Source of the DNA: Dendrobates tinctorius
Taxonomy: Eukaryota
Direction of reading: 5' to 3'
Assembly: GCF_039654945.1 (NCBI RefSeq)
Contig: NW_027361695.1
Span: 3,968,001 to 4,032,000 of the forward strand
Length of the DNA stretch: 64,000 nt
In this document: positions 4,201-61,782 of the stretch, one piece after another
Layout: each line of letters begins with the position of its first letter
Position numbering within the stretch: position 1 is the first letter of the stretch
Notes under the pieces: model-generated
The model's input: the letters and a program-made list of their open reading frames with translations, nothing else
Told to the model about the DNA's origin: nothing
Databases searched by the model: none
Program-made: the position numbers and the translations under genes

Positions 4201-4489
4201 ACAGTCCTCAGAGGTCACATGCCGTACATGAAAACATGATTGGCTACAGCAGTCAGGTAACTTCATTTGCGGTGGCGCTAGAAACCAGAAAGGCTGATGA
4301 ATCAAAGAGTGAATGATGCTAATACATTTTACTTCTGGGCAAAATTTTACATTTTTTAGATAACACAGAATTCACCATTCACATTAGTCACGGCTCACCT
4401 CCTTCTCCTGTACAGACTAATAAAACCTCTATATACAGAAGATAACACAGAATCCAGTAATCACCATAGGTGATGACACAACTCAACTC

Positions 4490-5290
4490 GCCACAGTCCT
4501 CCATACAGTATAATGCACTCCCCACAGTCCTCCATATAGTGTAATGCACTCTCCACAGTCCTGCATACAGTGTAATGCACTCCCCACAGTCCTCCATATA
4601 GTATAATGCACTCTCCACAGTCCTGCATACAGTGTAATGCACTCCCCACAGTCCTCCATATAGTATAATGCACTCCCCACAGTCCTCCATACAGTGTAAT
4701 GCATTCTCCACAGTCCTCCATACAGTGTAATGCACTCCCCACACTCCTCCATACAGTATAATGCACTCCCAACAGTCCTCCATACAGTATAATGCACTCC
4801 CCACAGTCCTCCATATAGTATAATGCACTCCCCACAGTCCTCCATATAGTGTAATGCACTCTCCACAGTCCTGCATACAGTGTAATGCACTCCCCACACT
4901 CCTCCATACAGTATAATGCACTCCCCACAGTCCTCCATATAGTATAATGCACTCCCCACAGTCCTCCATATAGTGTAATGCACTCTCCACAGTCCTGCAT
5001 ACAGTGTAATGCACTCCCCACACTCCTCCATACAGTATAATACACTCTCCTCAGTCCTCCATACAGTATAATGCACTCCCCACACTCCTCCATACAGTAT
5101 AATGCACTCCCCACAGTCCTCCATATAGTATAATGCACTCCCCACAGTCCTCCATATAGTATAATGCACTCCCCACAGTCCTCCATATAGTGTAATGCAC
5201 TCTCCACAGTCCTGCATACAGTGTAATGCACTCCCCACACTCCTCCATACAGTATAATGCACTCCCCACAGTCCTCCACACAGTTTAATG
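4490..5290. repeat. 30-bp minisatellite in PROK2 intron 1
   Basis: Tandem CCACAGTCCTCCATACAGTATAATGCACTC variants; source of repetitive minus-strand ORFs. Confidence 0.93.
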
Positions 5291-5550
5291 CAGATTGTAA
5301 GCTTGCGAGCAGCGTGACCCTCATTCCTCTTGGTATCTGTTGATTTCATGGAATCATAGACTCATAGATTTATGTGATTATTGCTATGCTGTAATGTCTT
5401 TTGTCTGTAAAAGTCCCCTCTAAAATGTAAAATGCTATGGAATATGTTGGCGCTATAGAAATAAAATGATGATGATGATTATTATTATTATGCACTCGCC
5501 ATAGTCCTCTATACAGTATTACGGCCATCACAATTTTCTCATTGATGTAA

Positions 5551-6309
5551 AGGGAATCTGTCACCCACTGGAAGATTTTTACGCTGTTAATATGGGCATA
5601 CAGGTGATAGGACTATTTGGACAATTCTACCTGTATGCCTCATTGCTGTGGTCTTACTATTGAGAAATCATCTTATAATCCTGTATGTTAATGAGTTCTT
5701 CCAGGCTCCGGGGCGTGCGGTGCCTGAAATAAAATTCTGCCTCTGGTGTCCATTTCTGTGCCACCCCCTCCCATCAGTGTCACAGTGCCCTGTGACGTGT
5801 ACCGATAGTCCCTGAAACCCGCGCTTGCGCCCTGCAATAGTGCGATTTATACTTATCTTTTCTGCCCTTGGCATTGACTCAATTGTTCTTCTGCGCAGGT
5901 GCAAGTGAGTCACTGCTACTTCAGTTGCACTTCATTAGCAGTGACTCGCCGACACCTGCGCAGAATAACAATGGAGTCAATGCCAATAGAAGGGCAGAAA
6001 AGATAAGTATAAATCGCACTTTTGCAGGGCGCAAGCGCGGGATTCAGGGACCATCAGTACACGCCACAGGCCACTGTGGTGCTGATGGGAGGTGGGGTGG
6101 TACACAAATTGACACTGGAGGCAGAGTTTTCTTTCAGGCACCGTATGCCCTAGAGCCTGAAAGAACTCATTAACATACAGGAATAAAAGATGATTTCTCA
6201 ACAGCAAGACCGCAGCAATGAGGCATACAGGTATGAGTGGTTGAACAATTGTATCACCTGTATGTCCATATTTATAGCTTAAAACGTCCCAGTGGGTGAC
6301 AAATTCCAT
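5551..6309. mobile_element. Palindromic MITE, T2/Kolobok-like
   Basis: Ends AGGGAATCTGTCACCCACTGG / CCAGTGGGTGACAAATTCCAT, TTAA-like flanks, internally self-complementary around 5940. Confidence 0.75.
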
Positions 6310-7552: not shown

Positions 7553-8108
7553 GGCTGGTTTCACATTTGCGCTTTTGTGCGCAGCGCATCGTGCGCACCC
7601 GTGCGCATGCGCACTGCGCACCTATGTTTAACATGACGTGCGCATGGTCTTGCGCACACTTGCGTTTTCGTGCGCATGCGTTTTTTTGTCTTTTGCGCCA
7701 GGCGCGCCAGACGCAACATGTTGCATTTTTTGGTGCGCCCTGTCTCGGCAAAAAAACGCATGCGCACGCTTGCGCACGGAATGCGCAAAAACAACACATT
7801 GAAGTCTATGGGAACACATGCGTGCGCATGGTCTTGCGCACGGTTGCGTTTTTTTGCGCATGCGTTTTTGAGTGAAACAAGTCTAGAATGTTCTCTAGAC
7901 AATGGAAAAAATGTCACACCTAAAAACGCATGTGCATAAAAAAACGCAAACGCATGCAAAAACGTATGTAAAACGCAAGCAACGCTGTGTTTTTTTGACG
8001 CATCAGCGTGCGCATGACGTAAAAAAAGCGCGTTTCTTTTGCGTTTTTTTTTTGCGTTTTTTATGCGCACGATGCGCTGCGCAAAAAAACGCTAATGTGA
8101 AACTAGCC
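7553..8108. mobile_element. PIF/Harbinger-type MITE
   Basis: TIRs GGCTGGTTTCACATT / AATGTGAAACTAGCC, TTA on both sides. Confidence 0.8.
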
Positions 8109-10805: not shown

Positions 10806-12352
10806 ATAAGATAAGATAAGATAATCCTTTAATCGTCCCACCATGGGGAAATTCAGAGCATTAAGGTACTGTCACACTTAGCGATGTACCAGCGATCCCG
10901 ACCAGTGATATGACGCGGTCAGGATCGCTGGTACATCGCTAAGTGGTCGCTAGTGAGCTGCCACACAGGCAGATCTCACTAGCGACATCGCTGGGGACGG
11001 TGGTCGCTACTTACCTGTCACACCAGGCGATCCTGCGTACTCCCGCCCGGCTCCACGCGTCGCTCGTCGTCACAGCAGGAAGCGCCGCAGGAAGCTGATG
11101 ACGAGAAACAGTCCTGGATGTTCTCGCACGATCAGCGATAACCAGCGGGGGAGCCGGTCGTAGGTAAGTATCAGACACAGCGATATCGCTAGCAATATCG
11201 CTATAACGTCACTAGTTATAGCGATATTGCTAGCGATATCGCTTAGTGTGACATGCCCTTTACAGCAGCAAGGCAGGAACAAGTACAGATACAGATGCAT
11301 AAAGGCATTACATGGACAGTAGGTAGGTACATATACGAAAGAAAAAAAAAAAAATGTAACCGGACTATCACAACTTTGGATCTATCAGTTCTCTGTTTGG
11401 GTCATTCTCCGTTTTGGACAGTGCTGGTTATACAGCCTAACTGCAGCAGGAAGGAAGGACTTTCGATAGCGCTCCCTCTCACATTTAGGATGAAGTAGCC
11501 GGTCACTGACAGTACTGCACATCTTTGTCACGGTCTCATTCATGGGATGGGAATCATTCTGCACCATGTAGCTCACCTTGGCCAGTATCCTCCTGTCGCC
11601 TACTTCCTGAACTGGGTCAAGGGGGCATCCCAGGACAGAGCTGGCCCTTCTAATCAGTTTGTCCAGCCTATTCCTGTCCCTGGTTGATATGCCACTACCC
11701 CAGCACGCCACACCAAAGAAGATGACTGATGCTACAACAGAGTTGAAGAAGGATGCAAGGAGTGCCCCTCTAACTCCGAAGGCTCTCAGCCTTCTGAGCA
11801 GATAAAGCCTGCTTTGGCCCTTCCTGTACACTGCATCCAAGTGATGGGCCCAGTCAAGCTTATTATTGAGGATCAAACCAAGGTACTTATAGGTGTCGAC
11901 TATCTCAATGTCATTTCCCTGAATGTTCACCACTACTGGTGGATTTTTGCCCTTGCGAAAGTCCACCACCAATTCCTTGGTCTTCCCGGAATTAATCCTA
12001 AGATGGTTCCTCTGACACCACTCCACAAAAGCTTGGTTAGTATCTCTGTACTCTCTTTCATCTCCTCCTGTGATGAGGCCTACTATTGCAGAGTCATCAG
12101 AATACTTCTGCAAGTAGCAGCTAGATGAGTTGCACCTAAAATCCGCAGTGTACAGTGTGAAGAGAAAAGGGGCAAGAACTGTACCTTGAGGTGCCCCTGT
12201 ATTGCAGATCACTGTGTCCACACCAATGCCCGGCCTGTAGGCAAACTGGAGAGGGTCCATATCCGAGCTCACTAGAGGACGGAGACGTGTGAGAACCAAT
12301 CTCTCTAATACCTTCATCAGGTGTGATGTCAATGCTACAGGTCTATAGTCAC
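10806..12352 (-). mobile_element. Rex1/Babar-like LINE, 5'-truncated
   Basis: Minus ORF with DYRPVALTS, QFAYRPG, GAPQGTVLAP, YSDD, YKYLG; 3' end in (CTTAT)n tail at about 10806-10823; interrupted by a MITE. Confidence 0.85.
10865..11258. mobile_element. Harbinger-type MITE in the LINE 3' UTR
   Basis: TIRs GGTACTGTCACACTTAGCGAT / ATCGCTTAGTGTGACATGCCC; same family as 24652-25496 and 54134-54479. Confidence 0.75.
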
Positions 12353-13214
12353 AAGATGCGTAAGCGATCGGACCTGTGGAGGAACAGGGGGAGGTAAGAA
12401 CATGGGGACATGGGGGGCCCGATGCCAGTGATAACCCATGGGCCCCGACACGCACCTGACGGTGATGCCAGCCCTGCCTGCAAGGGTCCCCCCTCTACCT
12501 CCGATGCAGCTGCAGTATGTCCGCCCCAATATATAGGTAGACAGACAATCAGGCTGGGAAGGGCCAGATAACCATGGAGCTTCCCAGTCTGATAAAATAA
12601 GCCCACAGCTGTCTGTTTTACCTTGGCTGGTTATGAAAAATACTGGGACCCCACGTCATTTTTTTAAAATTATTTATTTAATAGGTTTAATAAGGTTAAA
12701 CACCCTTTAGTGCAACATGAAAGGCATTAAAGAATGAAAGTTTATTATATGTAGGGGGCTTGTGAAATTATATATCTACAGAATATCTATCTATTTCTGT
12801 ATATAAGATTGCTGTATTAGTTTGTAAACTAGCTTTAAATTACATAGAGAATTATAATATGTAAAAGTTGATGTTAAAAATGCATGTCATACGGATGCAG
12901 GTGAGGGAAAAAAAATTGCACGCTCGCATGACATAAGTTGAACCATACAGATTCCACTCGTCCAACTTTTCTGGAGCAGAATCGGAGCTATTTTTTATAC
13001 GTTAATGTGAGTGAGCCCTTATGAACAGAGTTTGCTCCAATCATGGCAGTTTACACTCTTAGAAGCCGCTGTCAATCGTGACCGCGGCTTTAAAGAGGTT
13101 GGAAATGGTGCCCCTTCAGATGCCCCTAGATGCACTGTAATGTGATTTGCAAGGTGTGAATTTTATTGTCATTGCAAATGTGGGGCCTACTGAAAGTTCC
13201 TAGGTCTAGGTTCC

Positions 13215-17216: not shown

Positions 17217-18821
17217 CAGTGGGGAAAAAAAGTATTTAGTCAGTCAGCAATAGTGCAAGTTCCACCACTTAAAAAGATGAGAGGCGTCTGTAATTTACAT
17301 CATAGGTAGACCTCAACTATGGGAGACAAACTGAGAAAAAAAAATCCAGAAAATCACATTGTCTGTTTTTTTTTCATTTTATTTGCATATTATGGTGGAA
17401 AATAAGTATTTGGTCAGAAACAAAATTTCATCTCAATACTTTGTGATATATCCTTTGTTGGCAATGACAGAGGTCAAACGTTTTCTGTAAGTCTTCACAA
17501 GGTTGCCACACACTGTTGTTGGTATGTTGGCCCATTCCTCCATGCAGATCTCCTCTAGAGCAGTGATGTTTTTGGCTTTTCGCTTGGCAACACGGACTTT
17601 CAACTCCCTCCAAAGGTTTTCTATAGGGTTGAGATCTGGAGACTAGCTAGGCCACTCCAGGACCTTGAAATGCTTCTTACGAAGCCACTCCTTCTTTGCC
17701 CTGGCGGTGTGCTTTGGATCATTGTCATGTTGAAAGACCCAGCCACGTTTCATCTTCAATGCCCTTGCTGATGGAAGGAGGTTTGCACTCAAAATCTCAC
17801 GATACATGGCCCCATTCATTCTTTCATGTACCCGGATCAGTCGTCCTGGCCCCTTTGCAGAGAAACAGCCCCAAAGCATGATGTTTCCACCACCATGCTT
17901 TACAGTAGGTATGGTGTTTGATGGATGCAACTCAGTATTCTTTTTCCTCCAAACACGACAAGTTGTGTTTCTACCAAACAGTTCCAGTTTGGTTTCATCA
18001 GACCATAGGACATTCTCCCAAAACTCCTCTGGATCATCCAAATGCTCTCTAGCAAACTTCAGATGGGCCCGGACATGTACAGGCTTAAGCAGTGGGACAC
18101 GTCTGGCACTGCAGGATCTGAGTCCATGGTGGCGTAGTGTGTTACTTATGGTAGGCCTTGTTACATTGGTCCCAGCTCTCTGCAGTTCATTCACTAGGTC
18201 CCCCCGCGTGGTTCTGGGATTTTTGCTCACCGTTCTTGTGATCATTCTGACCCCACGGGGTGGGATTTTGCGTGGAGCACCAGATCGAGGGAGATTATCA
18301 GTGGTCTTGTATGTCTTCCATTTTCTAATTATTGCTCCCACAGTTGATTTCTTCACTCCAAGTTGGTTGGCTATTGCAGATTCACTCTTCCCAGCCTGGT
18401 GCAGGGCTAAAATTTTGTTTCTGGTGTCCTTTGACAGCTCTTTGGTCTTCACCATAGTGGAGTTTGGAGTCAGACTGTTTGAGGGTGTGCACAGGTGTCT
18501 TTTTATACTGATAACAAGTTTAAACAGGTGCCATTACTACAGGTAATGAGTGGAGGAAAGAGGAGACTCTTAAAGAAGAAGTTACAGGTCTGTGAGAGCC
18601 AGAAATCTTGATTGCTTGTTTCTGACCAAATACTTATTTTCCACCATGATATGCAAATAAAATGAAAAAAAACAGACAATGTGATTTTCTGGATTTTTTT
18701 TTCTCAGTTTGTCTCCCATAGTTGAGGTCTACCTATGATGTAAATTACAGACGCCTCTCATCTTTTTAAGTGGTGGAACTTGCACTATTGCTGACTGACT
18801 AAATACTTTTTTTCCCCACTG
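17217..18821 (-). mobile_element. Tc1 transposon, young full-length copy
   Basis: TA flanks, near-identical TIRs of about 200 bp starting CAGTGGGGAAAAAAAGTATTTAGTCAG; same family as 8528-10136 in the opposite orientation. Confidence 0.96.
17433..18455 (-). pseudogene. Tc1 DD34E transposase (340 codons) with one premature stop
   Basis: [10 protein letters not shown]...WSDETK...QHDNDPKH...[17 protein letters not shown]...KGYITKY-TGA; TAG at 17643-17645 where the other copy has CAG. Confidence 0.92.
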
Positions 18822-30001: not shown

Positions 30002-31114
30002 TTAGGTATCAATATAAGGCTCCCTTTGTGTTTGTGTGTTCCTGCAAGGTACATAAGATTTCAGACACAACCTGATTTCTTTGTTCAGCATGAAGCAGAC
30101 AATGGGATTTGCTCCAGCCTGAGCAAATGTCAACCACACTGCCACAGTCAGATACCCCTGAGGGAGAGCTGCAGACTTCATAAAGACCCTTAGATAGCAA
30201 GCCACTAGGTAAGGGGCCCAGAAGAGAAGAAATAAGAAGGTGATGACATAGAACATCTTGCTGAGCCTCTTCTCTTGCTTGAATTCCTCCAGCCCCAGAA
30301 GCCTCCTGATCTGGGTCTGAGTGGTCTGCCTCATGCCAACCAGAGTGGGAGGTGTTGGACCTCTCCCAAATCCTGCTATCCAGTTGGCAGCTGCTTGCCC
30401 GGCAGCTCCAGGTCCATGAAAGCTCCAGTTTTGGCTGATGGCTGGGGTTAACTGAGCTGGTTTCATCTTCCTGTGATCATATATAAAGAACAGCAGCTTC
30501 ATGTAGATAAAATGTGTGGCCCCCACAATGAAGGCCAGCATGAGGAGAAAGCCCAGGCTGTCATTGGCCTTGACATAACGGTGCTCAAAGGTGCATTGAT
30601 CCTCCTCCTTCATAAACTTGTAGGTGCCCACCTCAAAGACAGGTGGTAGGGCCATAGCCATGGACAGGATCCATGCCATAGCAATGATTAGGATGCAAGC
30701 CCAACCTGTCATTCTCTTGCAGTAGAACCTATGGTGGGCTATGGCCATGTACCTGGTCAAACTGATGGACAGCAGCATAAAGGCAGCATGGAAGCACAGC
30801 AGGACTGCTCCAAAGGCCACGATCCTGCAGCTCCTCTTGCTGTAGGTCCATTGGGATCCACTGCTGATGGATTTCAGCACCAGAGGGAAACAAAGCAAGG
30901 AACGGATGAGATCTCCAATGCACAGATCCAGCATCAGGTAATAGGGAGTCCTATGCAGGCTCTTGTCTCTCAGGGTAATGAATGCAAAGAGGAGATTACC
31001 CAGCAAGCTGACACAGGCGATGATACCCAGGGATGCCAGTTTAGCCACCGAGCCAGGGCTGATATCTGTGGGGAGAAGGGATGCATTGCTCTTCTGCAGC
31101 TCATGACCAGCCAT
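30002..31114 (-). CDS. GPR27: SREB-family orphan GPCR, SREB1/GPR27 (370 aa, intronless CDS)
   Basis: 7 hydrophobic segments; SREB motifs PYYLMLDLC, TRYMAIAHHRFY, FHGPGAAGQAAANWIAGFGRGPTPPTL, EEFKQEKRLSKMFY, WLTFAQAGANPIVCF; lies between PROK2 and EIF4E3 in the GPR27 orientation. Confidence 0.9.
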   Translation of the reverse strand: MAGHELQKSNASLLPTDISPGSVAKLASLGIIACVSLLGNLLFAFITLRDKSLHRTPYYLMLDLCIGDLIRSLLCFPLVLKSISSGSQWTYSKRSCRIVAFGAVLLCFHAAFMLLSISLTRYMAIAHHRFYCKRMTGWACILIIAMAWILSMAMALPPVFEVGTYKFMKEEDQCTFEHRYVKANDSLGFLLMLAFIVGATHFIYMKLLFFIYDHRKMKPAQLTPAISQNWSFHGPGAAGQAAANWIAGFGRGPTPPTLVGMRQTTQTQIRRLLGLEEFKQEKRLSKMFYVITFLFLLFWAPYLVACYLRVFMKSAALPQGYLTVAVWLTFAQAGANPIVCFMLNKEIRLCLKSYVPCRNTQTQREPYIDT

Positions 31115-33252: not shown

Positions 33253-33822
33253 TTAAGGATAGGCCATCATTGTTAATGTCTCAGACAACCCCTTTAAGGA
33301 CTGGGCCATTGTTCATTTTTTGCACTTAGTTTTTTTTAATTGCAACTGTAGATATAGAGACTGAATCTCAGGCCTCAGAAGTAAATATCAGAGGGGGTTA
33401 TGAGGTATGGCGGGTGGGGGAAGGGGGTTCCTGTGATCACTTGATAACTTTGGAGATAGAATTTGAGACCTTTCTCCTTGTATTTTCTTTTTGATTTGTT
33501 CATTGTAAACATTGTATAAATGTTTCCCAAACAAATTCCTTTGTTCTAAGTGAAAGTAACAAAGTTTCCTGTTTTACCCTCCAATAAGATAACAAGTGGC
33601 AAACTATTCCCATGTAAACATTTCTCTAAAAAACAATAAAATATACAGTTCTGGAAAAATTAAGAGACCACTGCCCAGTTTTATAAAAATCAGCTTCTCT
33701 CCATGTCTGACAGCCATTCCATTCCATTGTCAGTTGAATTCCAACCAGAGTACACCTCATTCTACTTAATGGGATTCTGATTAGGTGATCACCTGAACCA
33801 ATTCTTATTTAACGAAGGAAAG

Positions 33823-36630
33823 TGTTAGGAGTGGCGGAAGGCACTAAAACAATTAAATAATTAAAGTGCCTTCGCCACTCGGGGTCCACCGTGCGGTGGA
33901 TGACAAAACCGCTGTTGGGAGAGGCAGAGCACTAATATGCACAGGGTTTTAACTCACCCAGATGCAATAAGGCAAGCCCTGCTAAAGCACACAGAGCTGC
34001 AGGAAAAAATAACACAAAATAGTGTCGCTGAGCCTGTTAACAGCACAGGACCTCAGCGGCACACGTGCGGTAGCCGGAAACCGGAGTAGTTAAGGATAGT
34101 CACTACAACCGAGCGAACTTACCGTGTACACATGTGCTCGGCGTCGCAACTGCGCACACCTGGAAAGGCTGCAACAGCAAATATCACAAGCGCGATGCAG
34201 GACGCTAAGCTGCTGGAAGATGGAGCTTGTGCGCGTTGGCGTTAGCGCAGGTGCTGACAGAATACCACTCACTCACACAGACGTAATAACCAAGGGAAGG
34301 GGTTTCATAATGAGTCAGTCACCAGTCCAAGCATCCGTCACCATTCACACAGCAGCAGTATAAAAATACTAGCGCATGGCAGAGCGGCCATGCGCAATTT
34401 TTATAGCGTGCGGGACCTGCCGGAAATCTCCAGAGCCCTGAGCTAAGCCAATGAAATCAGGAGCAGGACCTGAGCACCTGACTCCTGAACTCCAATGGGA
34501 GCTTGTCCCGTGGGCATGCTCAGAAGCTGGGAAAAAGGACAGCCTCTGGAGACAAATGTGAGAATCTGGATTCCCGCATAGGCATCATAGAACCCAGATT
34601 CCTAACATTACCCCCCTCCTAGGGCCCCCTCCTCCCTGAACCTTCCGATCAGGGGAGACGAGATCGCAAGGTCTCAGGAGGGACATCCAGGAGACAATGG
34701 GAGTGGGAGTTTTAGGTGGAGGCTGCCGCGTAAAGGCGGGCGTAGCCACACTCCGTTCGGGAAGGCTATCCCGAGCACATAGGGTGCATGCCCGAATGAA
34801 CTTTTTTTCGTCCCGAGCCCTGTGCGGCCACCAATACGATCCGGCCAGAGACTTCGTGGTCTGCATATAGCCACGATGGCCGTCCGCATTGGGCGCATGT
34901 GCCCACGCGAGGACTTTAGGCCGCTGGCAAGGAGGGACAAAAGCATCGCCTACCGACTCACAGTCAGACCATTGCGGGGCGCTGTCTTCCGGAGAAGCAG
35001 CGGGTAGATGGTGACAACCGCATATGGACTGTTGAGCCGGACATGTCTCAGAAATGGCGCGAGACACTTCCATGGGCTCGGGGGGTGGAACCTCTGGCTC
35101 GGGCAGATCCAAAGGCTCAAAAAATTTGGGAGCCGGGGTACCTCTCCGTTTGGAGTGAGCTCGCTCCAAACTACGCTCCGAAAAACTGAGGTCAATCCGC
35201 GAGGAAATTGATATTAACTCCGAGACTGGTAGGAATTTCTCTCATGGAGAGAGCATCCTTTACATGCTCCGCTAATCCCTTCCAGAAGACAGGAGCCTTG
35301 TCGGACCACTCTAACTCAGACGCCAGTGTCCGAAAACGGACGGCGTATTGACTGACCGAGAGTGATCCTTGAGACAAGGAGAGCAGTTGGAGAGAGGTAT
35401 CGTGTATAACCCGTGGACCAAGAAACACCTGCCTGATAGCAGTTAGATTAGCGGCGGTCCGGATATCTGGGTCACCACGCTCCCATAGTGGCATAGCCCA
35501 TTCCAGCGCCTTGCCCGACAGTAGGGATATAAAGGCCACCTTGGCCCGCTCTGTAGGGAATTGCGCAGCCAGCAGCTCCAAGTGAATCGAGCACTGGCTG
35601 ATAAAACCTCTACAGGAGGCACCATCCCCAGAATATTTTTCGGGTAACGGGAGGCGGGTAACTGTCGGCGCAAGGGTGGACATGGACATATGCCCTACCA
35701 TGTCCGTGAGTGCTTGGACAGCAGCATCTGTGGCCTGCGAAGCTGCGAGAGCCCTCTCAAGGGTGGTCAAGCGAGTCTCGAGCTGTCGCACGCACTGCAA
35801 CAGTTGCTGCTGATCTGCCATCTCCAGCCAGACCCTGGCACTAGTATTATGTTAGGAGTGGCGAAAGGCACTAAAAAAAATAAATAATTAAAGTGCCTTC
35901 GCCACTCGGGGTCCACTGTGCGGTGGATGACAAAACCGCTGCTGGGAGAGGCAGAGCACTAATATGCACAGGGTTCTAACCCAGATGCAATAAGGCAAGC
36001 CCTGTTAAAGCACACAGAGCTGCAGGGAAAAATAACACAAAATAGTGTCGCTGAGCCTGTTAACAGCACAGGATCTCAGCGGCACACGTGCGGTAGCCGG
36101 AAACCGGAGTAGTTAAGGATAGTCACTACAACCGAGCGGACTTACCGTGTACACGTGTGCTCGGCGTCGCAACTGCGCACGCCTGGAAAGGCTGCAACAG
36201 CAAATATCGCAAGCACGATGCAGGACACTAAGCTGCTGGAAGATGGAGCTTGTGTGCGTTGGCATTAGCCCAGGTGCTGACAGAATACCACTCACTCACA
36301 CAGACATAATAACCAAGGGAAGGGGTTTCATAATGAGTCAGTCACCAGTACAAGCATCCGTCACCATTCACACAGCAGCAGTATAAAAATACTAGCGCAT
36401 GGCAGAACAGCCATGTGCACTTTTTATAGCGTGCGGGACCTGCCGGAAATCTCCAGAGCCCTGAGCTAAGCCAATGAAATCAGGAGCAGGACCTGAGCAC
36501 CTGACTCCTGAACTCCAATGGGAGCTTGTCCCGTGGGCATGCTCAGAAGCTGGAAAAAAGGACAGCCTCTGGAGACAAATGTGAGAATCTGGATTCCTGC
36601 ATAGGCATCATAGAACCCAGATTCCTAACA
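33823..36630 (-). mobile_element. Non-autonomous Ty3/Gypsy (sushi/Tf1-like) LTR retrotransposon
   Basis: LTRs 33823-34607 and 35850-36630 (TGTTAGGA...TCCTAACA); PPT AGGAGGGGGG next to the 3' LTR; direct repeat GGAAAG on both sides; gag plus integrase zinc-finger remnant, no RT. Confidence 0.93.
35192..35821 (-). CDS. Retrotransposon Gag (sushi/PEG10-type), 209 aa, probably frameshifted at the C-terminus
   Basis: Coiled-coil N-terminus, LPEKYSGD..CRGFISQC, LLSGKALEWA, LSQGSLSVSQYAVRFRTLA, FWKGL; the PEPMEV motif continues in ORF 34585-35169. Confidence 0.8.
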   Translation of the reverse strand: MADQQQLLQCVRQLETRLTTLERALAASQATDAAVQALTDMVGHMSMSTLAPTVTRLPLPEKYSGDGASCRGFISQCSIHLELLAAQFPTERAKVAFISLLSGKALEWAMPLWERGDPDIRTAANLTAIRQVFLGPRVIHDTSLQLLSLSQGSLSVSQYAVRFRTLASELEWSDKAPVFWKGLAEHVKDALSMREIPTSLGVNINFLAD

Positions 36631-38479
36631 GGAAAGTATAAAAACCCTGCTGTGGTGTTCACAATCCTCTTGCAATAGGACAAGCTGGATGGCAAAACAA
36701 GTGCTAGTGATAGCCCAAAAGTAATAGGATGAAAAAATAACTTTTAAGCATGCCAAAGGAGTTGAAAAGAAAAGTCTTGAGTGAGGAAAAGAAGGGCTCA
36801 ATTCTGGCTTTAATATCAGAGGGATACAGTGAGTGTCATGTTGCCTCCATCCTTAAATTTTCTAAGACGGCAGTCCATTACAACAAGGTCAAGCAGCAGA
36901 CATTGGGGACAACAAAGCTACAGACCGGCAGAGGGCGAGAACGACTCCACTGACCGGGAAGACTGTCATCTTATTCGAATGTCACTCAGCAACCGCAGGA
37001 TGACATCAAGTGACCTACAAAAGGAATGGCAAATGGCAGCTGGAGCGAAGTGCACTTTAAGAACAGTTTGTAACAGGCTCTTAGAGGCAGGGCTCAAGTA
37101 ATGTAAAGATAGAAAAAAGCCTTTCATAAATGAGAAGCAAAGGAGAGCCAGGCTGAAATTTGCCAGAGACCATAAGGATTGGCCCATAGAGGACTGGAGT
37201 AAGGTAATCTTCTCTGTTGAGTCTAATTTTCAGCTTTGCCCAACACCTGGTCGTCTAATGGTTAGAAGGAGACCTGGAGAGCCGTACAAGCCATAGTGTC
37301 TTGCACCCAGTGTGAAATTTGGTGGAGGATCGGTGATGATCTGGGGATGCTTCAGCAAGGCTGGAATTGGGCAGGTTTATCTTTGCAAAGGACGTATGAA
37401 ACAAGCCGCATACAAGGTTATCCTGGAAAACCAGTTGATTCCTTCTGCTCAGGCAATGTTCCCCAACTCTGAGGACCGGTTTTTCCAGCAGGAAAATGCA
37501 CCATGCCACACAGCTAGGTCATTCAATGTGTGGATGAAGGACCACCACATCAAAGCCCTGTCCTGGCCAGCCCAATCTCCAGACCTGAACCCCATTGAAA
37601 ACCTCTGGAATGTAATCAAGAGGAAGATGGATAGTCACAAGCCATCAGACAAAGAAGAACTGCTTACATTTGTGTACCAGGAGTGGCATAAGGTCTCCCA
37701 AAAGCCGTGAGAAAGACTGGTGGAAAGCAGCCAAGACGCATGAAAGCTGTGATTAACAATCATGGTTATTCCGCAAAATATTGATTTCTGAACTCTTCCT
37801 GAGGTAAAACATTAGTATTGTTGTTTCTAAAGGATTATGAACTTGTTTTCTTAGCATTATTTGAGGTCTGCATTTTTTTGTTATTTTGATCATTTCTCAT
37901 TTTCTGAAACTAAATACAAAGTTTATTGCTTGGAAATCCGGAGACATGTTGTCTGTAGTTTATAGACTAAAAGAGCAATTCACATTTAACTCAAAAATAT
38001 AAAGAGAAAAATCAGACTAAAGGAAAATTTGAGAGTGGTCTCTTAATTTTTGCCAGAGCTGTGTATATATATATGTTATTTTTGTTAGTATTGTTTCATT
38101 TTCTTTCTTTTTTACACCATTAAAAAAAAATGAACCCCTTTCTGACATCGGCTGTAATAGTACGCTGATGTCGGACTCCCACTGCTTGGTGTGGGCTCCG
38201 GCGCTTTCAGGGCACATGTCAGCTGATATATCCAGCTGACATGTGCCCTCAACAGCCATGGGTGGAATTGTGATTCACCCGCGGCTGTTAACTAGTTAAA
38301 AGCCGCTGTCAATTTCTGACAGTGGCATTAAGGGTGAGTGCACACAGTGCGGATTTGCAGGTAAAACTTGAGAAGAAAACCGTGGTGGTCGGTAAAGGGT
38401 TAACGAGCTGAACAACATTGTGTGACGGATTGTGAACGAAGATCGGATCGCATCGCATCCTGGACCCGACAAGTCTGAG

Positions 38480-38862: not shown

Positions 38863-39189
38863 GTACCGGGGGCCGCTGCTGTGGGGGCAGGGAGGGAGCG
38901 CGCCGCCGCCGCCGCCGCTCGTCTGTCCTGTCAGCCGGGGGTTCACCCCCTGGAGCCTGGACCCGCCGCCCTTCCCCCGGTATCTACATCCTCCCGCTCC
39001 CGGTCACCGGCTGCTGTTTCTGTTCTTGTGATTTTTTCAAGATCCCTTCCGTCTTGTTAGTTTTCATTTTCTCATTAACCCCTTCCTGCTGGGGTCACAA
39101 TGCGGCGTTGTCTTTTTCTCGGCTTGTGTTTTTGGTTCATTTTATTTATTTTTTAAATAATGAAGAGAGGGAGGGAAAAAAGTATACTG

Positions 39190-41535
39190 GAGGCGAGAGC
39201 GGCGGCCAGCGGGGTGGGCGTCTATCGAGAGGCGAGAGCGGCGGCCAGCGGGGTGGGCGTCTATCGAGAGGCGAGAGCGGCGGCCAGCGGGGTGGGCGTC
39301 TATCGAGCGGCGGCCAGCGGGGTGGGTGTCTATCGGGAGGCGAGAGCGGCGGCCAGCGGGGTGGGTGTCTATCGGGAGGCGAGAGCGGCGGCCAGCGGGG
39401 TGGGCGTCTATCGAGAGGCGAGAGCGGCGGCCAGCGGGGTGGGCGTCTATCGAGCGGCGGCCAGCGGGGTGGGCGTCTATCGAGCGGCGGCCAGCGGGGT
39501 GGGCGTCTATCGGGAGGCGAGAGCGGCGGCCAGCGGGGTGGGCATCTATCGAGAGGCGAGAGCGGCGGCCAGCGGGGTGGGCGTCTATCGAGAGGCGAGA
39601 GCGGCGGCCAGCGGGGTGGGCGTCTATCGAGAGGCGAGAGCGGCGGCCAGCGGGGTGGGCGTCTATCGAGAGGCGAGAGCGGCGGCCAGCGGGGTGGGCG
39701 TCTATCGAGAGGCGAGAGCGGCGGCCAGCGGGGTGGGCGTCTATTGAGAGGCGGCCAGCGGGGTGGGCGTCTATCGAGCGGCGGCCAGCGGGGTGGGTGT
39801 CTATCGGGAGGCGAGAGCGGCGGCCAGCGGGGTGGGTGTCTATCGGGAGGCGAGAGCGGCGGCCAGCGGGGTGGGTGTCTATCGGGAGGCGAGAGCGGCG
39901 GCGCGGGGGTGGGTGTCTATCGGGAGGCGAGAGCGGCGGCGCGGGGGTGGGTGTCTATCGGGAGGCGAGAGCGGCGGCGCGGGGGTGGGTGTCTATCGGG
40001 AGGCGAGAGCGACGGCGTGGGGGTCTATCGGGAGGCGAGAGCGACGGCGCGCGGGGGGGGGGGTCTATCGGGAGGCGAGAGCGGCGGCCAGTGGGGTGGG
40101 CGTCTATCGAGAGGCGAGAGCGGCGGCCAGCGGGGTGGGCGTCTATCGAGCGGCGGCCAGCGGGGTGGGCGTCTATCGAGAGGCGAGAGCGGCGGCCAGC
40201 GGGGTGGGTGTCTATCGGGAGGCGAGAGCGGCGGCCAGCGGGGTGGGTGTCTATCGGGAGGCGAGAGCGGCGGCGCGGGGGTGGGTGTCTATCGGGAGGC
40301 GAGAGCGGCGGCGCGGGGGTGGGTGTCTATCGGGAGGCGAGAGCGACGGCGTGGGGGTCTATCGGGAGGCGAGAGCGACGGCGCGCGGGGGTGGGTGTCT
40401 ATCGGGAGGCGAGAGCGGCGGCGCGCGGGGGTGGGTGTCTATCGGGAGGCGAGAGCGGCGGCGCGCGGGGGTGGGTGTCTATCGGGAGGCGAGAGCGGCG
40501 GGGGTGGGTGTCTATCGGGAGGCGAGAGCGGCGGCGCGCGGGGGTGGGTGTCTATCGGGAGGCGAGAGCGGCGGCGCGCGGGGGTGGGTGTCTATCGGGA
40601 GGCGAGAGCGGCGGCGCGCGGGGGTGGGTGTCTATCGGGAGGCGAGAGCGGCGGCCAGTGGGGTGGGCGTCTATCGAGAGGCGAGAGCGGCGGCCAGCGG
40701 GGTGGGCGTCTATCGAGAGGCGAGAGCGGCGGCCAGCGGGGTGGGCGTCTATCGAGCGGCGGCCAGCGGGGTGGGCGTCTATCGGGAGGCGAGAGCGGCG
40801 GCCAGCGGGGTGGGTGTCTATCGGGAGGCGAGAGCGGCGGCGCGGGGGTGGGTGTCTATCGGGAGGCGAGAGCGGCGGCGCGCGGGGGTGGGTGTCTATC
40901 GGGAGGCGAGAGCGGCGGCGCGCGGGGGTGGGTGTCTATCGGGAGGCGAGAGCGGCGGGGCGCGGGGGTGGGTGTCTATCGGGAGGCGAGAGCGGCGGCG
41001 CGCGGGGGTGGGTGTCTATCGGGAGGCGAGAGCGGCGGCGCGCGGGGGTGGGTGTCTATCGGGAGGCGAGAGCGGCGGCGCGCGGGGGTGGGTGTCTATC
41101 GGGAGGCGAGAGCGGCGGCGCGCGGGGGTGGGTGTCTATCGGGAGGCGAGAGCGGCGGCGCGCGGGGGTGGGTGTCTATCGGGAGGCGAGAGCGGCGGCG
41201 CGCGGGGGTGGGTGTCTATCGGGAGGCGAGAGCGGCCGTCCATGGGGGGGGTGTATCGAGAGGCGAGAGCGGCCGTCCATGGGGGGGGGTGTATCGAGAG
41301 GCGAGAGCGGCCGTCCATGGGGGGGGGTGTATCGAGAGGCGAGAGCGGCCGTCCATGGGGGGGGGTGTATCGAGAGGCGAGAGCGGCCGTCCATGGGGGG
41401 GGGGTGTATCGAGAGGCGAGAGCGGCCGTCCATGGGGGGGGGGTGTATCGAGAGGCGAGAGCGGCCGTCCATGGGGGGGGGGTGTATCGAGAGGCGAGAG
41501 CGGCCGTCCATGGGGGGGGTGTATCGAGAGGCGAG
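39190..41535. repeat. GC-rich 38-40-bp minisatellite in EIF4E3 intron 1
   Basis: Tandem GAGGCGAGAGCGGCGGCCAGCGGGGTGGGCGTCTATCG(A) and variants. Confidence 0.95.
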
Positions 41536-54689: not shown

Positions 54690-57084
54690 GTGACAGTTTT
54701 CACACGTATCGGAGACCCTTACATACAGACACCCATTCAAGAGAATGGATCTGTGCACGTGTCACTGTTTCCACGGACCGTGTGTCCGTGGTTTTATTTA
54801 TTTTTTCTTTTTATTACCAGTCTGGGCTGCAAAACGTCCAGCACACTGACACATGGATGACTTCCGTGTGTCATCAGTGTGACACAAATCGGTGATACTA
54901 TTCGCACTATTTCCCAGTGCATGGTGCTGATGACAGCTAAATAATAAAAATTGACGCGGGGTTCCTCTGAAGTTTTGCCTGGCTGGTTATTAAAAATAAA
55001 CAGCTGTAGGGTGCAACCCTCAGCTGTAGGCTTAAGCAAGGCTGGTAATCAGGAATAGAGGGGTCCCCATGCTGTATTTTAAATTATAAATATAAGGGGG
55101 CCCCCCAATTTTTGACGACCAGCCAAGCTAAAGCAGACAGCTGAGGACTGGTAATCTCAGGCTGGTATGGGGCCATGGATATTACTGCCCTCCCCCTGCT
55201 TAAAAATAGTAGCCCGCAGCCTCCCAGAAAAGGTGCATCTATTAGATGGGCTAATTCTAATGCTTTGCCTGGCTCTTCCCACTGTAGCGGTGGCAAGTGG
55301 GGTTGGTGACTCCTTTGTATTGTCCGGTGACATCAAGCCCCACGGCTTGGTAACGGAGAGGCGTCTATCAGACACCTATGCATTAATAATCCTATAGTTA
55401 CATGGTAAATAAAGACAGCCAGACTAAAGTCCTTTAAAAAAAAAAAAACAAAAAAAAACCCAGATGCGACTGTCCAGGTTGAGAAAAAACTGGGGAATGA
55501 GCTGCTGGCAGGCAATGCTGACTGTTTCCAATGAGTCAAGCAAAACTAGAATTGTGTAAATTTCCTAAAAATGAGGATATTGCTTCTTCCGGTGGGTCGG
55601 ATCACTAGACCCGACCAGTGATAATAACAAAAAGGCTCCTAAATGGAACACAAGGTCCGTGTGCTTGACCAAAAGCACAAAGGTGAGCCCCAGTACAGTA
55701 CACCAAAATTACCCTGGTGCACTCACCCCCCCCCAGGGCACCCACTTTTCATCTAACCATTAAAAGGTAAAAGAAAAAAAAAACAGGCTTTTTTAATTGA
55801 ATAGATAATTGCTAAAATGGTACAAAGAACCATTTTTTAGTTTTTTTTTGCCCCCCCTCCAAATTTAAATTGATATTTATGACAAGGGTGCCCTCTAGTG
55901 TCCACACTTAGTACTGCAGGTAGGTTTGCAATTGCCTAGAACCATAAGAATCCGCTTAAAAATGTCAATTTTTTTGCCAAGTCCTGACACTGTAAGTTTG
56001 GTAATCCAGGGGAAAATGGTGCTAAAATCTAAATATATTTGTACATGTGCACTATATGGCAGTATGATTTCTGTTATGGGTAACGTTATATCGCACGATG
56101 ATCCTCCCTAAAAAGAAAATAGGGCACAATTTTTTTTATTTCTTTCTGTACGTTATATGGTAAAGTGAATGGTGTCAATAAAAACTAAAAGTTGCCCCAC
56201 TGGGAAAGAGCCCTATACAGTTATGTCAATGGAAAAATAAAAGTTATGACTCTTTGAAGGAGATGAAAAGACAAGCAGAAGAATGAAAATTGCTCATGAT
56301 GGGAATAATAATGTTACATGAGGCTGCATAAATAAACTGACCCTGTAAGAAATAAAATTGAAGCTTTGTGATATGGCGCGATGTCCAGCCTCCATTGAAA
56401 TGAAATGCAAGTGCTGCCACCCAGTGGATATCGCTGGCATAACACACAATGTCTGAGCAGTCCATAATAATACTCCCTGTTAGGTTTTTCCCAAGATTAT
56501 AATAGACTTTCGGCACAGTAATAATCTGCAGGAGGAAATCGGAGTATTTATTCAATGCCCATAGAGCTGTCTTATTTATGGACAGTTCTACTGTTAAGGG
56601 CTCTTACTGTGAAGTCTCATCATTTTCTAATCTATTATGGTAAATCTGAGAGCAGCGATCTCGGAGATGATGATGAATTAGTATATCAGCGGCGCCAGCA
56701 GGAAAGCAATTTATAAGCTTGTCCGACATCCAGAGTAGTTGCAGGAGGATATTGGTTTTAGCATTTCATTGTAATCTGGATCAGATTGGGATCTGTAGAA
56801 GATGGTGGAGAAGGTGGACAGGAAAGCAGCCAGTGCCAACATCAAGGCTAAATATGTGTCCAAAAGCTTCTCTATGCCATAGGGGAGATTAGTTGCACAA
56901 ACACCCATGGTACCCCCTTATCTCTGTCTCAATAAAAGAAAATCAAAGTCCCGGGCCCCAACAAGCGCCATCAAAGGGGCCCAATTATCCTCATTTGTCG
57001 TTAAAATTCTGCATCCCAATAGTGAAGACAAAGGGGCATGTAAATAGTTGGTGCCCATCCAGGACCCTCCTCCCAAACCCATTG

Positions 57085-60000
57085 TACATCCTGTATTATA
57101 CCCCAGAGCTGCACTCACTATTCTGCTGGTGCAGTCACTGTGAACATACATTACATTACTGATCCTGAGTTACATCCTGCATTATACCCCAGAGCTGCAC
57201 TCACTATTCTGCTGGTCCAGTCTCTGTGTACATACATTACATTACTGATCTTGTATTATACTCCAGAGCTGCACTCACTATTCTGCTGATGCAGTCACTG
57301 TACATACATTATACTCCAGAGCTGCACTCACTATTCTGCTGGTGCAGTCACTGTGTACATACATTACTGATCCTGAGATACATCTTGTATTATACTCCAG
57401 AGCTGCACTCACTATTCTGCTGGTGCAGTCACTGTGTACATACATTACTGATCCTCAGTTACATCTTGTATTATACTCCAGAGCTGCACTCACTATTCTG
57501 CTGGTGCAGTCACTGTGTACATACATTACATTTCCGATCCTGAGTTACATCCTGTATTATACTCCAGAGCTGCACTCACTATTCTGCTGGTGCAGTCACT
57601 GTGTACATACATTACCGATCCTGAGTTATATCCTGTATTATCCTCCAGAGCTGCACTCACTATTCTGCTGGTGCAGTCACTGTGTACATACATTACATTA
57701 CTGATCCTGAGTTACATCTTGTATTATCCTCCAGAGCTGCACTCACATTACTGATCCTGAGTTACATCCTGTATTATACTCCAAAGCTGCACTCACTATT
57801 CTGCTGGTGCAGTCACTGTGTACATACATTACATTCCTGATCCTGAGTTACATCTTGTATTATCCTCCAGAGCTGCACTCACTATTCTGCTGGTGCAGTC
57901 ACTGTGTACATACATTACTGATCCAGAGTTACATCCTGTATTATACTCCAGAGCTGCACTCACTATTCTGCTGGTGCAGTCACTGTGTACATACATTACA
58001 TTACCGATCTTGAGTTACATCCTGTATTATCCTCCAGAGCTGCACTCACTATTCTGCTGGTGCAGTCATTGTGTACATACTTTACATTACTGATCCTGAG
58101 TTAAATCCTGTATTATACGCCAGAGCTGCACTCACATTACTGATCCTGAGTTACATCCTGTATTATACTCCAAAGCTGCACTCACTATTCTGCTGGTGCA
58201 GTCACTGTGTACATACATTACATTACTGATCCTGAGTTACATCCTGTATTATACTCCAGAGCTGCACTCACTATTCTGCTGGTGCAGTCACAGTGTAATT
58301 ACATTACATTACCGATCCTGAGTTACATCCTGTATTATACTCCAGAGCTGCACTCACTATTCTGCTGGTGCAGTCACTGTGTACATACTTTACATTACTG
58401 ATCCTGAGTTAAATCCTGTATTATACGCCAGAGCTGCACTCACATTACTGATCCTGAGTTACATCCTGTATTATCCTCCAGAGCTGCACTCACTATTCTG
58501 CTGGTGCAGTCAGTGTGTACATACAGTACATTACTGATCCTGAATTACATCCTGTATTATACTCCAGAGCTGCACTCACTATTCTGCTGGTGCAGTCACT
58601 GTGTACATACATTACCTTCCTGATCCTGAGTTACATCCTGTATTATACTCCAAAGCTGCACTCACTATTCTGCTGGTGCAGTCACTGTGTACATACATTA
58701 CTGATCCTCAGTTACATCTTGTATTATACTCCAGAGCTGCACTCACTATTCTGCTGGTGCAGTCACTGTGTACATACATTACATTTCCGATCCTGAGTTA
58801 CATCCTGTATTATACTCCAGAGCTGCACTCACTATTCTGCTGGTGCAGTCACTGTGTACATACATTACCGATCCTGAGTTATATCCTGTATTATCCTCCA
58901 GAGCTGCACTCACTATTCTGCTGGTGCAGTCACTGTGTACATACATTACATTACTGATCCTGAGTTACATCTTGTATTATCCTCCAGAGCTGCACTCACA
59001 TTACTGATCCTGAGTTACATCCTGTATTATACTCCAAAGCTGCACTCACTATTCTGCTGGTGCAGTCACTGTGTACATACATTACATTCCTGATCCTGAG
59101 TTACATCTTGTATTATCCTCCAGAGCTGCACTCACTATTCTGCTGGTGCAGTCACTGTGTACATACATTACTGATCCAGAGTTACATCCTGTATTATACT
59201 CCAGAGCTGCACTCACTATTCTGCTGGTGCAGTCACTGTGTACATACATTACATTACCGATCTTGAGTTACATCCTGTATTATCCTCCAGAGCTGCACTC
59301 ACTATTCTGCTGGTGCAGTCATTGTGTACATACTTTACATTACTGATCCTGAGTTAAATCCTGTATTATACGCCAGAGCTGCACTCACATTACTGATCCT
59401 GAGTTACATCCTGTATTATACTCCAAAGCTGCACTCACTATTCTGCTGGTGCAGTCACTGTGTACATACATTACATTACTGATCCTGAGTTACATCCTGT
59501 ATTATACTCCAGAGCTGCACTCACTATTCTGCTGGTGCAGTCACAGTGTACATACATTACATTACCGATCCTGAGTTACATCCTGTATTATACTCCAGAG
59601 CTGCACTCACTATTCTGCTGGTGCAGTCACTGTGTACATACTTTACATTACTGATCCTGAGTTAAATCCTGTATTATACGCCAGAGCTGCACTCACATTA
59701 CTGATCCTGAGTTACATCCTGTATTATCCTCCAGAGCTGCACTCACTATTCTGCTGGTGCAGTCAGTGTGTACATACAGTACATTACTGATCCTGAATTA
59801 CATCCTGTATTATACTCCAGAGCTGCACTCACTATTCTGCTGGTGCAGTCACTGTGTACATACATTACCTTCCTGATCCTGAGTTACATCCTGTATTATA
59901 CTCCAAAGCTGCACTCACTATTCTGCTGGTGCAGTCAGTGTGTACATACAGTACATTACTGATCCTGAGTTACATCCTGTATAATACTCCAGAGCTGCAC

Positions 60001-61782
60001 TTACTATTCTGCTGGTGCAGTCACTGTGTACATACATTACATTCCAGATCCTGAGTTACATCCTGTATTATACCCCAGAGCTGCACTCACTATTCTGCTG
60101 GTGCAGTCACTGTGTACATACTTTACATTACTGATCCTGAGTTAAATCCTGTATTATACGCCAGAGCTGCACTCACATTACTGATCCTGAGTTACATCCT
60201 GTATTATCCTCCAGAGCTGCACTCACTATTCTGCTGGTGCAGTCAGTGTGTACATACAGTACATTACTGATCCTGAATTACATCCTGTATTATACTCCAG
60301 AGCTGCACTCACTATTCTGCTGGTGCAGTCAGTGTGTACATACATTACTGATCCTGAGTTACATCCTGTATAATACTCCAGAGCTGCACTCACTATTCTG
60401 CTGGTGCAGTCACTGTGTACATACATTACATTACTGATCCTGAGTTACATCCTGTATTATCCTCCAGAGCTGCACTCACTATTCTGCTGGTGCAGTCACT
60501 GTGTACATACATTACCTTCCTGATCCTGAGTTACATCCTGTATTATACTCCAAAGCTGCACTCACTATTCTGCTGGTGCAGTCACTGTGTACATACATTA
60601 CTGATCCTGAGTTACATCCTGTATTATACTCCAGAGCTGCACTCACTATTCTGCTGGTGCAGTCACTGTGTACATACATTACATTACTGATCCTGAGTTA
60701 CATCCTGTATTATACCCCAGAGCTGCACTCACTATCCTGCTGGTGCAGTCACTGTGTACATACATTACCTTCCTGATCCTGAGTTACATCCTGTATTATA
60801 CTCCAAAGCTGCACTCACTATTCTGCTGGTGCAGTCAGTGTGTACATACATTACTGATCCTGAGTTACATCCTGTATAATACTCCAGAGCTGCACTCACT
60901 ATTCTGCTAGTGCAGTCACTGTGTACATACATTACATTACTGATCCTGAGTTACATCCTGTATTATACTCCAAAGCTGCACTCACTATTCTGCTGGTGCA
61001 GTCACTGTGTACATACATTACATTCCTGATCCTGAGTTACATCCTGTATTATATTCCAGAGCTGTACTCAGTATTCTGCTGGTGCAATCACTGTGTAAAT
61101 ACATTACATTACTGATCCTGAGTTACATCCTGTATTATACCCCAGAGCTGCACTCACTATTCTGCTGGTGCAGTCACTGTGTACATACATTACCTTCCTG
61201 ATCCTGAGTTACATCCTGTATTATACTCCAAAGCTGCACTCACTATTCTGCTGGTGCAGTCAGTGTGTACATACATTACTGATCCTGAGTTACATCCTGT
61301 ATAATACTCCAGAGCTGCACTCACTATTCTGCTAGTGCAGTCACTGTGTACATACATTACATTACTGATCCTGAGTTACATCCTGTATTATACTCAAAAG
61401 CTGCACTCAATATTCTGCTGGTGCAGTCACTGTGTACATACATTACATTCCTGATCCTGAGTTACATCCTGTATTATATTCCAGAGCTGTACTCAGTATT
61501 CTGCTGGTGCAATCACTGTGTACATACATTACATTACTGATCCTGAGTTACATCCTGTATTATACCCCTGAGCTGCACTCACTATTCTGCTGGTGCTGTC
61601 ACTGTGTACATACATTACATTACTGATCCTGAGTTACATCCTGTATTATACCCCAGAGCTGCACTCACTATTCTGCTGGTGCAGTCACTGTGTACATACA
61701 TTACATTACTGATCCTGAGTTACATCCTGTATTATACTCCAGAGTCGCACTCGCAATTCTACTGCTGCAGTCACTGTGTACA
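57085..61782 (+). repeat. 4.7-kb array of the 86-bp satellite with higher-order periodicity
   Basis: Continuous monomers of 86 bp, 81 bp and shorter; diagnostic variants recur at a 1253-bp offset. Confidence 0.96.

Follow-up and report, generated by a model that had tools for sequence, protein, structure and literature searches.

In the fission yeast retrotransposon Tf1, the first 11 nucleotides (nt) of the element's own RNA pair with its primer binding site (PBS), and cleavage by RNase H falls between nt 11 and nt 12 (PMC7175516). Reports that describe or implicate self-priming of this kind concern Tf1/sushi elements of hosts ranging from fungi to vertebrates (PMC6317226 and PMC4600332, which cite Butler et al. 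2001 and Lin and Levin 1997), and for the vertebrate members it was proposed in 2001 (Butler et al. 2001, cited in PMC6317226, PMC4600332). Among frogs, Amn-san-type chromoviruses are the most abundant long terminal repeat (LTR) elements (PMC4131045). Here we describe an LTR retroelement in a 64-kb stretch of the Dendrobates tinctorius genome (contig NW_027361695.1, positions 3,968,001 to 4,032,000; hereinafter the window, in whose coordinates all positions are given). Judged by its gag domains and by the pol architecture of its relatives, the element is assigned to a frog family of the vertebrate Tf1/sushi lineage (chromovirus, Ty3/gypsy). An initial annotation had read a Tf1-type self-priming signature in it, against a background (11-nt self-priming in Tf1, and its proposal for the vertebrate sushi group) that agrees with what PMC7175516, PMC6317226 and PMC4600332 state on these points. 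The comparison of related elements described below makes it probable that minus-strand DNA synthesis in this family is primed by the RNA's own 5' end, in the manner of Tf1.

The element lies on the minus strand at 36630-33823 and spans 2,808 nt, with an internal part of only ~1.2 kb. It is the single copy of its family within the window. Two pattern scans for further copies in metagenome contigs had no hits, a result without bearing on the frog genome. From its 5' end to its 3' end, the boundaries are as follows.

36631..36636, minus strand: upstream target-site duplication CTTTCC; the identical hexamer lies directly at both element ends
35850..36630, minus strand: 5' LTR, 781 nt, TGTTAGG...CCTAACA, from the LTR-LTR alignment
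34608..34620, minus strand: polypurine tract AGGAGGGGGGTAA, abutting the 3' LTR; the same tract precedes the 3' LTR of the homologue in Ranitomeya imitator
33823..34607, minus strand: 3' LTR, 785 nt, in which the TATA box (34405-34398) and the 11-mer (34375-34365) of the 5' LTR recur
33817..33822, minus strand: downstream target-site duplication CTTTCC

The element is a genuine LTR retrotransposon insertion: its LTRs have TG..CA ends, a 6-bp duplication flanks it and a polypurine tract precedes the 3' LTR. The two LTRs are 96.7% identical in their alignment, with 26 mismatches and 5 gap columns over 785 columns. Because 12 of the 26 mismatches are CpG transitions, the insertion is taken to be an old one, decayed by methylation.

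The LTR-LTR alignment places the end of the 5' LTR at A 35850, and the minus-strand sequence that follows directly is TAATACTAGTGC (35849-35838). Three features define the putative priming system.

36421..36428, minus strand: TATA box TATAAAAA, the sole TATAWA in the LTR, invariant in the Ranitomeya homologue
36388..36398, minus strand: putative self-primer GCGCTAGTATT, predicted to be transcript nt 1-11, pairing with the PBS; T at -1 and G at +1
35838..35848, minus strand: predicted PBS AATACTAGTGC, starting one base (T 35849) past the LTR end and complementary to 36398-36388

Specifically, the first G of the self-primer 11-mer lies 30 nt from the first T of the TATA box, and the 11-mer pairs with the PBS at 11 of 11 positions, pair 3 (G 36396, T 35840) being the one G-U. 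The initial annotation had given the same pairing, and its letters and coordinates for the PBS, the TATA box and the 11-mer are all correct on the minus strand. Its further statement that a TGG start is missing also holds: no TGG occurs in the first 19 nt past the 5' LTR end, where the sequence after 35850 reads TAATACTAGTGCCAGGGTC. A PBS of the tRNA type, which starts with TGG near U5 and is complementary to a tRNA 3' end, was not found in the window element.

The probability of such a match by chance was estimated from dinucleotide-preserving shuffles of the LTR, in which an 11-nt run with at most one G-U was sought at offsets 0-6. Such a run was reached in 22-45 of 2000-4000 shuffles (P ~0.011). 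The position of the match, exactly 30 nt after the TATA box, is a further coincidence of about 1 in 70 that falls outside the shuffle test. The complementarity is thus unlikely to be due to chance, and taken alone it would not be conclusive.

The evidence that carries the argument comes from related elements. A word search with the window gag retrieved LDOC1-like and gag proteins with 32-54% identity, and the contigs encoding them were examined; the nearest proteins to the window gag are those annotated 'LDOC1-like' and the gag proteins of chromodomain elements. Six families more distant than the Ranitomeya homologue have the same layout with different letters.

L001/L002: R-start segment GCCGGATCTT, PBS AAGATCCGGC
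L006: R-start segment GTCTGGTCGTA, PBS TACGACCAGAC
L007: R-start segment GCCAGATTGT, PBS ACAATCTGGC
L008: R-start segment GTTCAGTCCT (taken from the 3' LTR), PBS AGGACTGAAC
L011: R-start segment GTTCATGCATG, PBS CATGCATGAAC
L017-19 and L022: R-start segment GTCAGATCGTT, PBS AACGATCTGAC

All six have a first segment of 10-11 nt that starts with G, is preceded by T and lies ~28-31 nt after a TATA-like box, and in all six the complement of this segment begins 1-2 nt past the terminal CA of the LTR. Between the PBS end and the gag ATG lie at most 16 nt, and in L011 the two overlap. As in the window element, no TGG lies beside the LTR. The letters of the segment differ in every one of the six families.

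Counting the window element, the Ranitomeya homologue (L005) and these six, eight families were compared for pairing. Standard pairs occupy 85 of the 88 cells, and pairs 2-9 are each represented by two to four pair types; the predicted start is T(-1)/G(+1) in 8/8 families. In a scan of the LTR end at all offsets between -40 and +40, complementarity peaked at +2/+3 in each of the seven elements tested. Shuffle tests gave P values of 0.002-0.027 per family, which combine by Fisher's method to 2e-8 over the six families tested. Taken together, the aligned sequences indicate that the self-primer and PBS segments covary between related elements, and the self-primer/PBS pair and the start near 36398 that the initial annotation had proposed are supported by families that retain the layout and not the letters. 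One relative, L010 (Hemibagrus), has no clear primer/PBS pair, and this copy looks decayed. L003, L004 and L023 were left out of the layout test because their contigs are too short upstream.

A further contig, L024 (Hyla sarda), carries copies of the L001-type family at 5758-6147 and 7982-8000, with the PBS AAGATCCGGC. Its LTR primer has decayed to GCCAGATCTT at a CpG, and the 5' LTR of its annotated 'LDOC1-like' gene is cut short by other sequence.

The closest homologue is L005 of Ranitomeya imitator, where the gene is likewise annotated 'LDOC1-like'; its LTR promoter can be aligned with that of the window element. The two share the polypurine tract, the TATAAAA box and the spacing from TATA box to 11-mer. 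The R of L005 starts with GCGCTAGTATA (3' LTR) or GCACTAGTATA (5' LTR), and its PBS, TACACTAGCGC (L005 9974-9984), follows one T after ...CTAACA. Relative to the window element, both sides of pair 11 have changed, from U-A to A-U, a compensatory swap. Pair 3 is G-C in L005 and G-U in the window, where T 35840 occupies a former CpG that has C in the homologue; the window T is therefore most simply explained as a CpG-to-TpG change. L005 is an older copy, with LTRs 91-93% alike. Its R-U5 measures 160 nt, compared with 549 nt in the window copy, and the middle part of the LTR is absent from it.

A subfamily seen at loose contig ends in the window's own species (36374-36404, runs X19 and X15) has an R that starts with GCGCTAGTGTA in place of GCGCTAGTATT. 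This R start is the exact complement of the Ranitomeya PBS TACACTAGCGC.

The predicted RNA structure of the window element brings the two segments together. The R-U5-PBS RNA (573 nt, 36398 to 35826) folds far better than shuffled sequences (z = -6.6), and both the minimum free energy (MFE) structure and the centroid pair nt 3-11 with the PBS (9 of 11 pairs), with pairing probabilities of 0.73-1.0. The MFE structures of L001, L002, L006 and L007 contain all pairs of the 5'-end/PBS duplex. Folding this region had been suggested in the initial annotation as a check, and its outcome, a 5' end paired with the PBS in the MFE structures of the window element and four relatives, agrees with the reading given there. 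Adjacent to the PBS, the fold contains one further element.

35856..35907, minus strand: predicted hairpin of 16 bp in the 3'-terminal part of U5, ending 7 nt before the PBS, present in the MFE and centroid structures

Tf1 needs a stem-loop of this type, the U5-IR stem-loop, which the window hairpin resembles, and by analogy the two may have comparable roles. A search of Rfam returned only two far sub-threshold matches to miRNA hairpins, both on the U5 hairpin, and no tRNA-like match.

These data suggest the following mechanism. RNA polymerase II would start at G 36398, 30 nt past the TATA box. Transcript nt 1-11 would fold back across the 549-nt R-U5 and pair with the 11-nt site one base past U5. 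As in Tf1, the element RNase H would then cut after nt 11, the enzyme coming from a helper element in the case of the window copy, and the freed 3' OH would be extended into U5. Extension from this point would account for the single nucleotide between the LTR end and the PBS. The sequences show the complementarity, its exact position and its retention under changed letters in related families, together with a predicted fold; the start at G 36398, the cleavage and the priming are inferred.

Several observations weigh against this mechanism. When G-U pairs are allowed without limit, an 11-nt run somewhere in the 781-nt LTR has P 0.13, and the window duplex does contain a G-U at pair 3. The start at 36398 has been placed solely by the TATA spacing and by the T/G rule, and downstream of it the LTR contains no AATAAA or ATTAAA, which leaves the R/U5 border undefined. 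The first two nt of the transcript have pairing probabilities of only 0.2-0.3 in the predicted fold. L005 has one or two A.C mismatches (pair 9 is A.C), and its predicted RNA fold does not contain the primer/PBS duplex.

The alternative that survives best is that the pairing is real and selected and serves another role, for instance in leader cyclisation for packaging, in dimerisation or in translational control, while the primer is, for example, an internal tRNA piece or fragment. The support for the pairing consists of sequence and predicted structure, which such a role would also account for, and the leader is strongly structured overall, as the z-score above indicates. We nevertheless regard another role as unlikely. 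The complement lies 1-2 nt past the terminal CA in 7/7 elements, which is where the first deoxynucleotide must be added; since synthesis must begin there to produce the LTR end, this position supports priming and not merely structural pairing. Moreover, no TGG is present at the PBS position, pairing with a tRNA would not make the PBS covary with the +1 region of each family, and the mechanism has been shown by experiment, as reported in PMC7175516, for Tf1, a member of the same lineage.

A functionless chance match in the window element is considerably less probable still. Free G-U pairing makes an 11-nt run common in an LTR of this length (the P of 0.13 above), and the window copy is dead and decaying, with its 12 CpG transitions between LTRs. 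Set against this are the P of 0.011 with at most one G-U, the position exactly 30 nt past the sole TATA box, the recurrence of the layout in other families (combined P 2e-8 over six tested) and the alignment of the homologous Ranitomeya sites with the window sites. It is scarcely credible that the initial annotation put the PBS in the wrong place and that this is an ordinary Ty3/gypsy element primed by a tRNA: a TGG does occur 20 nt past the LTR end, in TCTGGCTGGAGATGG (about 35830-35816), but the LTR-LTR alignment fixes the end at 35850 and a PBS 20 nt further on would mean a longer LTR, the TGG stretch overlaps the gag start codon, no tRNA-like Rfam match was obtained, and the relatives likewise have no TGG beside the LTR. 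The window itself contains no tRNA gene.

Self-priming is thus proposed for the family, and not for an active element in the window, because the window copy is pol-deleted and decayed. Two coding segments remain.

35192..35821, minus strand: gag open reading frame (ORF), 209 aa, truncated before the zinc knuckle; the C-terminus is absent in the alignment with relatives
34705..34950, minus strand: integrase H2C2 zinc-binding fragment, ~80 aa, the sole pol remnant (Pfam Integrase_H2C2, E 9e-12)

The gag matches two Pfam families, Retrotrans_gag PF03732 (E 1e-7, 32.5 bits, cut-off 24.1) and DUF4939/RTL1-8_LDOC PF16297 (E 1e-7, 32.2 bits, cut-off 29). The H2C2 fragment is 35-38% identical (tblastn) to the integrase of chromodomain-bearing relatives, and tblastn with the relatives' pol found no other pol match in the window element. 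Specifically, the copy lacks protease, reverse transcriptase, RNase H, the integrase core and any chromodomain. In contrast, the intact or near-intact gag relatives L001, L006, L012, L017 and L023 encode RVT_1, RNase H, Integrase_H2C2, rve, SH3_Tf2-1 and Chromo domains, a pol layout that is the one of Tf1/sushi chromoviruses, and their gag is of the RTL/LDOC1 type. As nearly all of pol has been lost, the window copy is non-autonomous and could only have moved with proteins supplied by autonomous relatives.

Among the described systems close to the window element are Tf1 and Tf2 of Schizosaccharomyces pombe and Tj1 of S. japonicus. Like these, it has, right behind U5, a PBS of ~11 nt whose complement is the (here predicted) start of its own RNA, with no tRNA match (for the window element, no TGG start and no tRNA-like hit in Rfam), and a U5 stem-loop beside the PBS, predicted in the case of the window. 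An integrase with SH3_Tf2-1 and a chromodomain, as in Tf1 and Tf2, is found in the relatives of the frog family. It differs from the yeast elements in its vertebrate host, in a gag of the LDOC1/RTL type, in the G-U pair, and in a long structured leader, R-U5 being 549 nt in the window copy and 160-700 nt in relatives. Cleavage and priming are demonstrated, in the experiments that PMC7175516 reports on them, for Tf1 only.

Two features link the element to the vertebrate sushi/Amn-san group: its PF16297 gag, of the family to which the RTL/SIRH genes derived from sushi-ichi in mammals belong, and the pol architecture seen in its relatives. It differs in being another family, a pol-deleted derivative with high copy number in this frog. 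Like tRNA-primed Ty3/gypsy elements and retroviruses, it has the order LTR-PBS-gag...PPT-LTR (PPT, polypurine tract), TG..CA ends and a PBS 1-2 nt after U5; unlike them, its PBS has no TGG start and matches the start of its own R in place of a tRNA 3' end. It also resembles non-autonomous derivatives of the LARD/TRIM type in having kept LTRs, PBS, PPT and part of gag while losing protease, reverse transcriptase, RNase H and the integrase core, and in a very high k-mer depth in short reads, but differs from them in keeping a 209-aa gag ORF.

The priming mode is already known for the Tf1/sushi group, and the window family is a well-supported but ordinary example that leaves the known mechanism of self-priming unchanged. 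What it adds is a comparative set of eight vertebrate families in which the letters have turned over in full while pairing, position and promoter spacing are kept. The priming signals have survived in a pol-less derivative that relies on helper elements. For genome annotation, this means that LTR finders requiring a PBS of the tRNA type will overlook these abundant frog elements or score them wrongly.

Short-read contigs from several runs of the same species, and from two other species labels, contain thousands of variant pieces over the element, and the k-mer depth over it is very high and very uneven. Two blocks, one covering the promoter and +1 (36529-36290) and one covering the U5 hairpin and PBS (35929-35810), exceed the LTR middle in depth by a factor of 10-100. 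Among the variant rows listed for the family contigs, no majority variant falls inside either 11-mer, which hints that the G-U pair may be the majority state of the family and not private to the window copy. A more far-reaching and rather doubtful reading is that of a very high-copy non-autonomous family in which selection would keep only the promoter/+1 primer and U5 hairpin/PBS blocks, with the G-U stable in most copies. Should the G-U indeed hold throughout the family, it would mean that the RNA template passes on the PBS, with no re-copying from the self-primer, and this would provide natural-history evidence on plus-strand transfer in self-primed elements.

The LTR middle (35930-36289) contains two consensus-like splice signals 126 nt apart, CG/GTAAGT at 36145 and TTTTTCCCTGCAG, whose last base is 36020 (slash, splice position; the second signal is cut at its end). 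No joint spliced between the signals at 36145 and 36020 was found in the short-read contigs. A single contig from a DNA run (X1, word depth 8) links 35847 with 36387 in opposite strand orientation; in it, the reverse complement of the gag leader and PBS meets R precisely at the microhomology between primer and PBS. This joint could represent a rearranged subfamily or a template-switch product.

Other than the element, the window contains a receptor ORF, transposon remnants and tandem repeats. At 30002-31114 (minus strand), ~2.7 kb from the element, lies an intact single-exon ORF of 370 aa for a seven-transmembrane receptor of the rhodopsin family (Pfam 7tm_1, E 5e-39). The segments at 17643-18455 and 11385-12455 (both minus strand) are transposon remnants, comprising the N-terminus of a transposase of the Tc1/Sleeping-Beauty type (HTH_SB, HTH_Tnp_Tc3_2) and part of a reverse transcriptase (RVT_1). 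Tandem repeats form long arrays at 4362-5436, at 39128-41331, and at 56985-60400 and 40-511; their units measure 31 nt, 39-40 nt and 81-86 nt.

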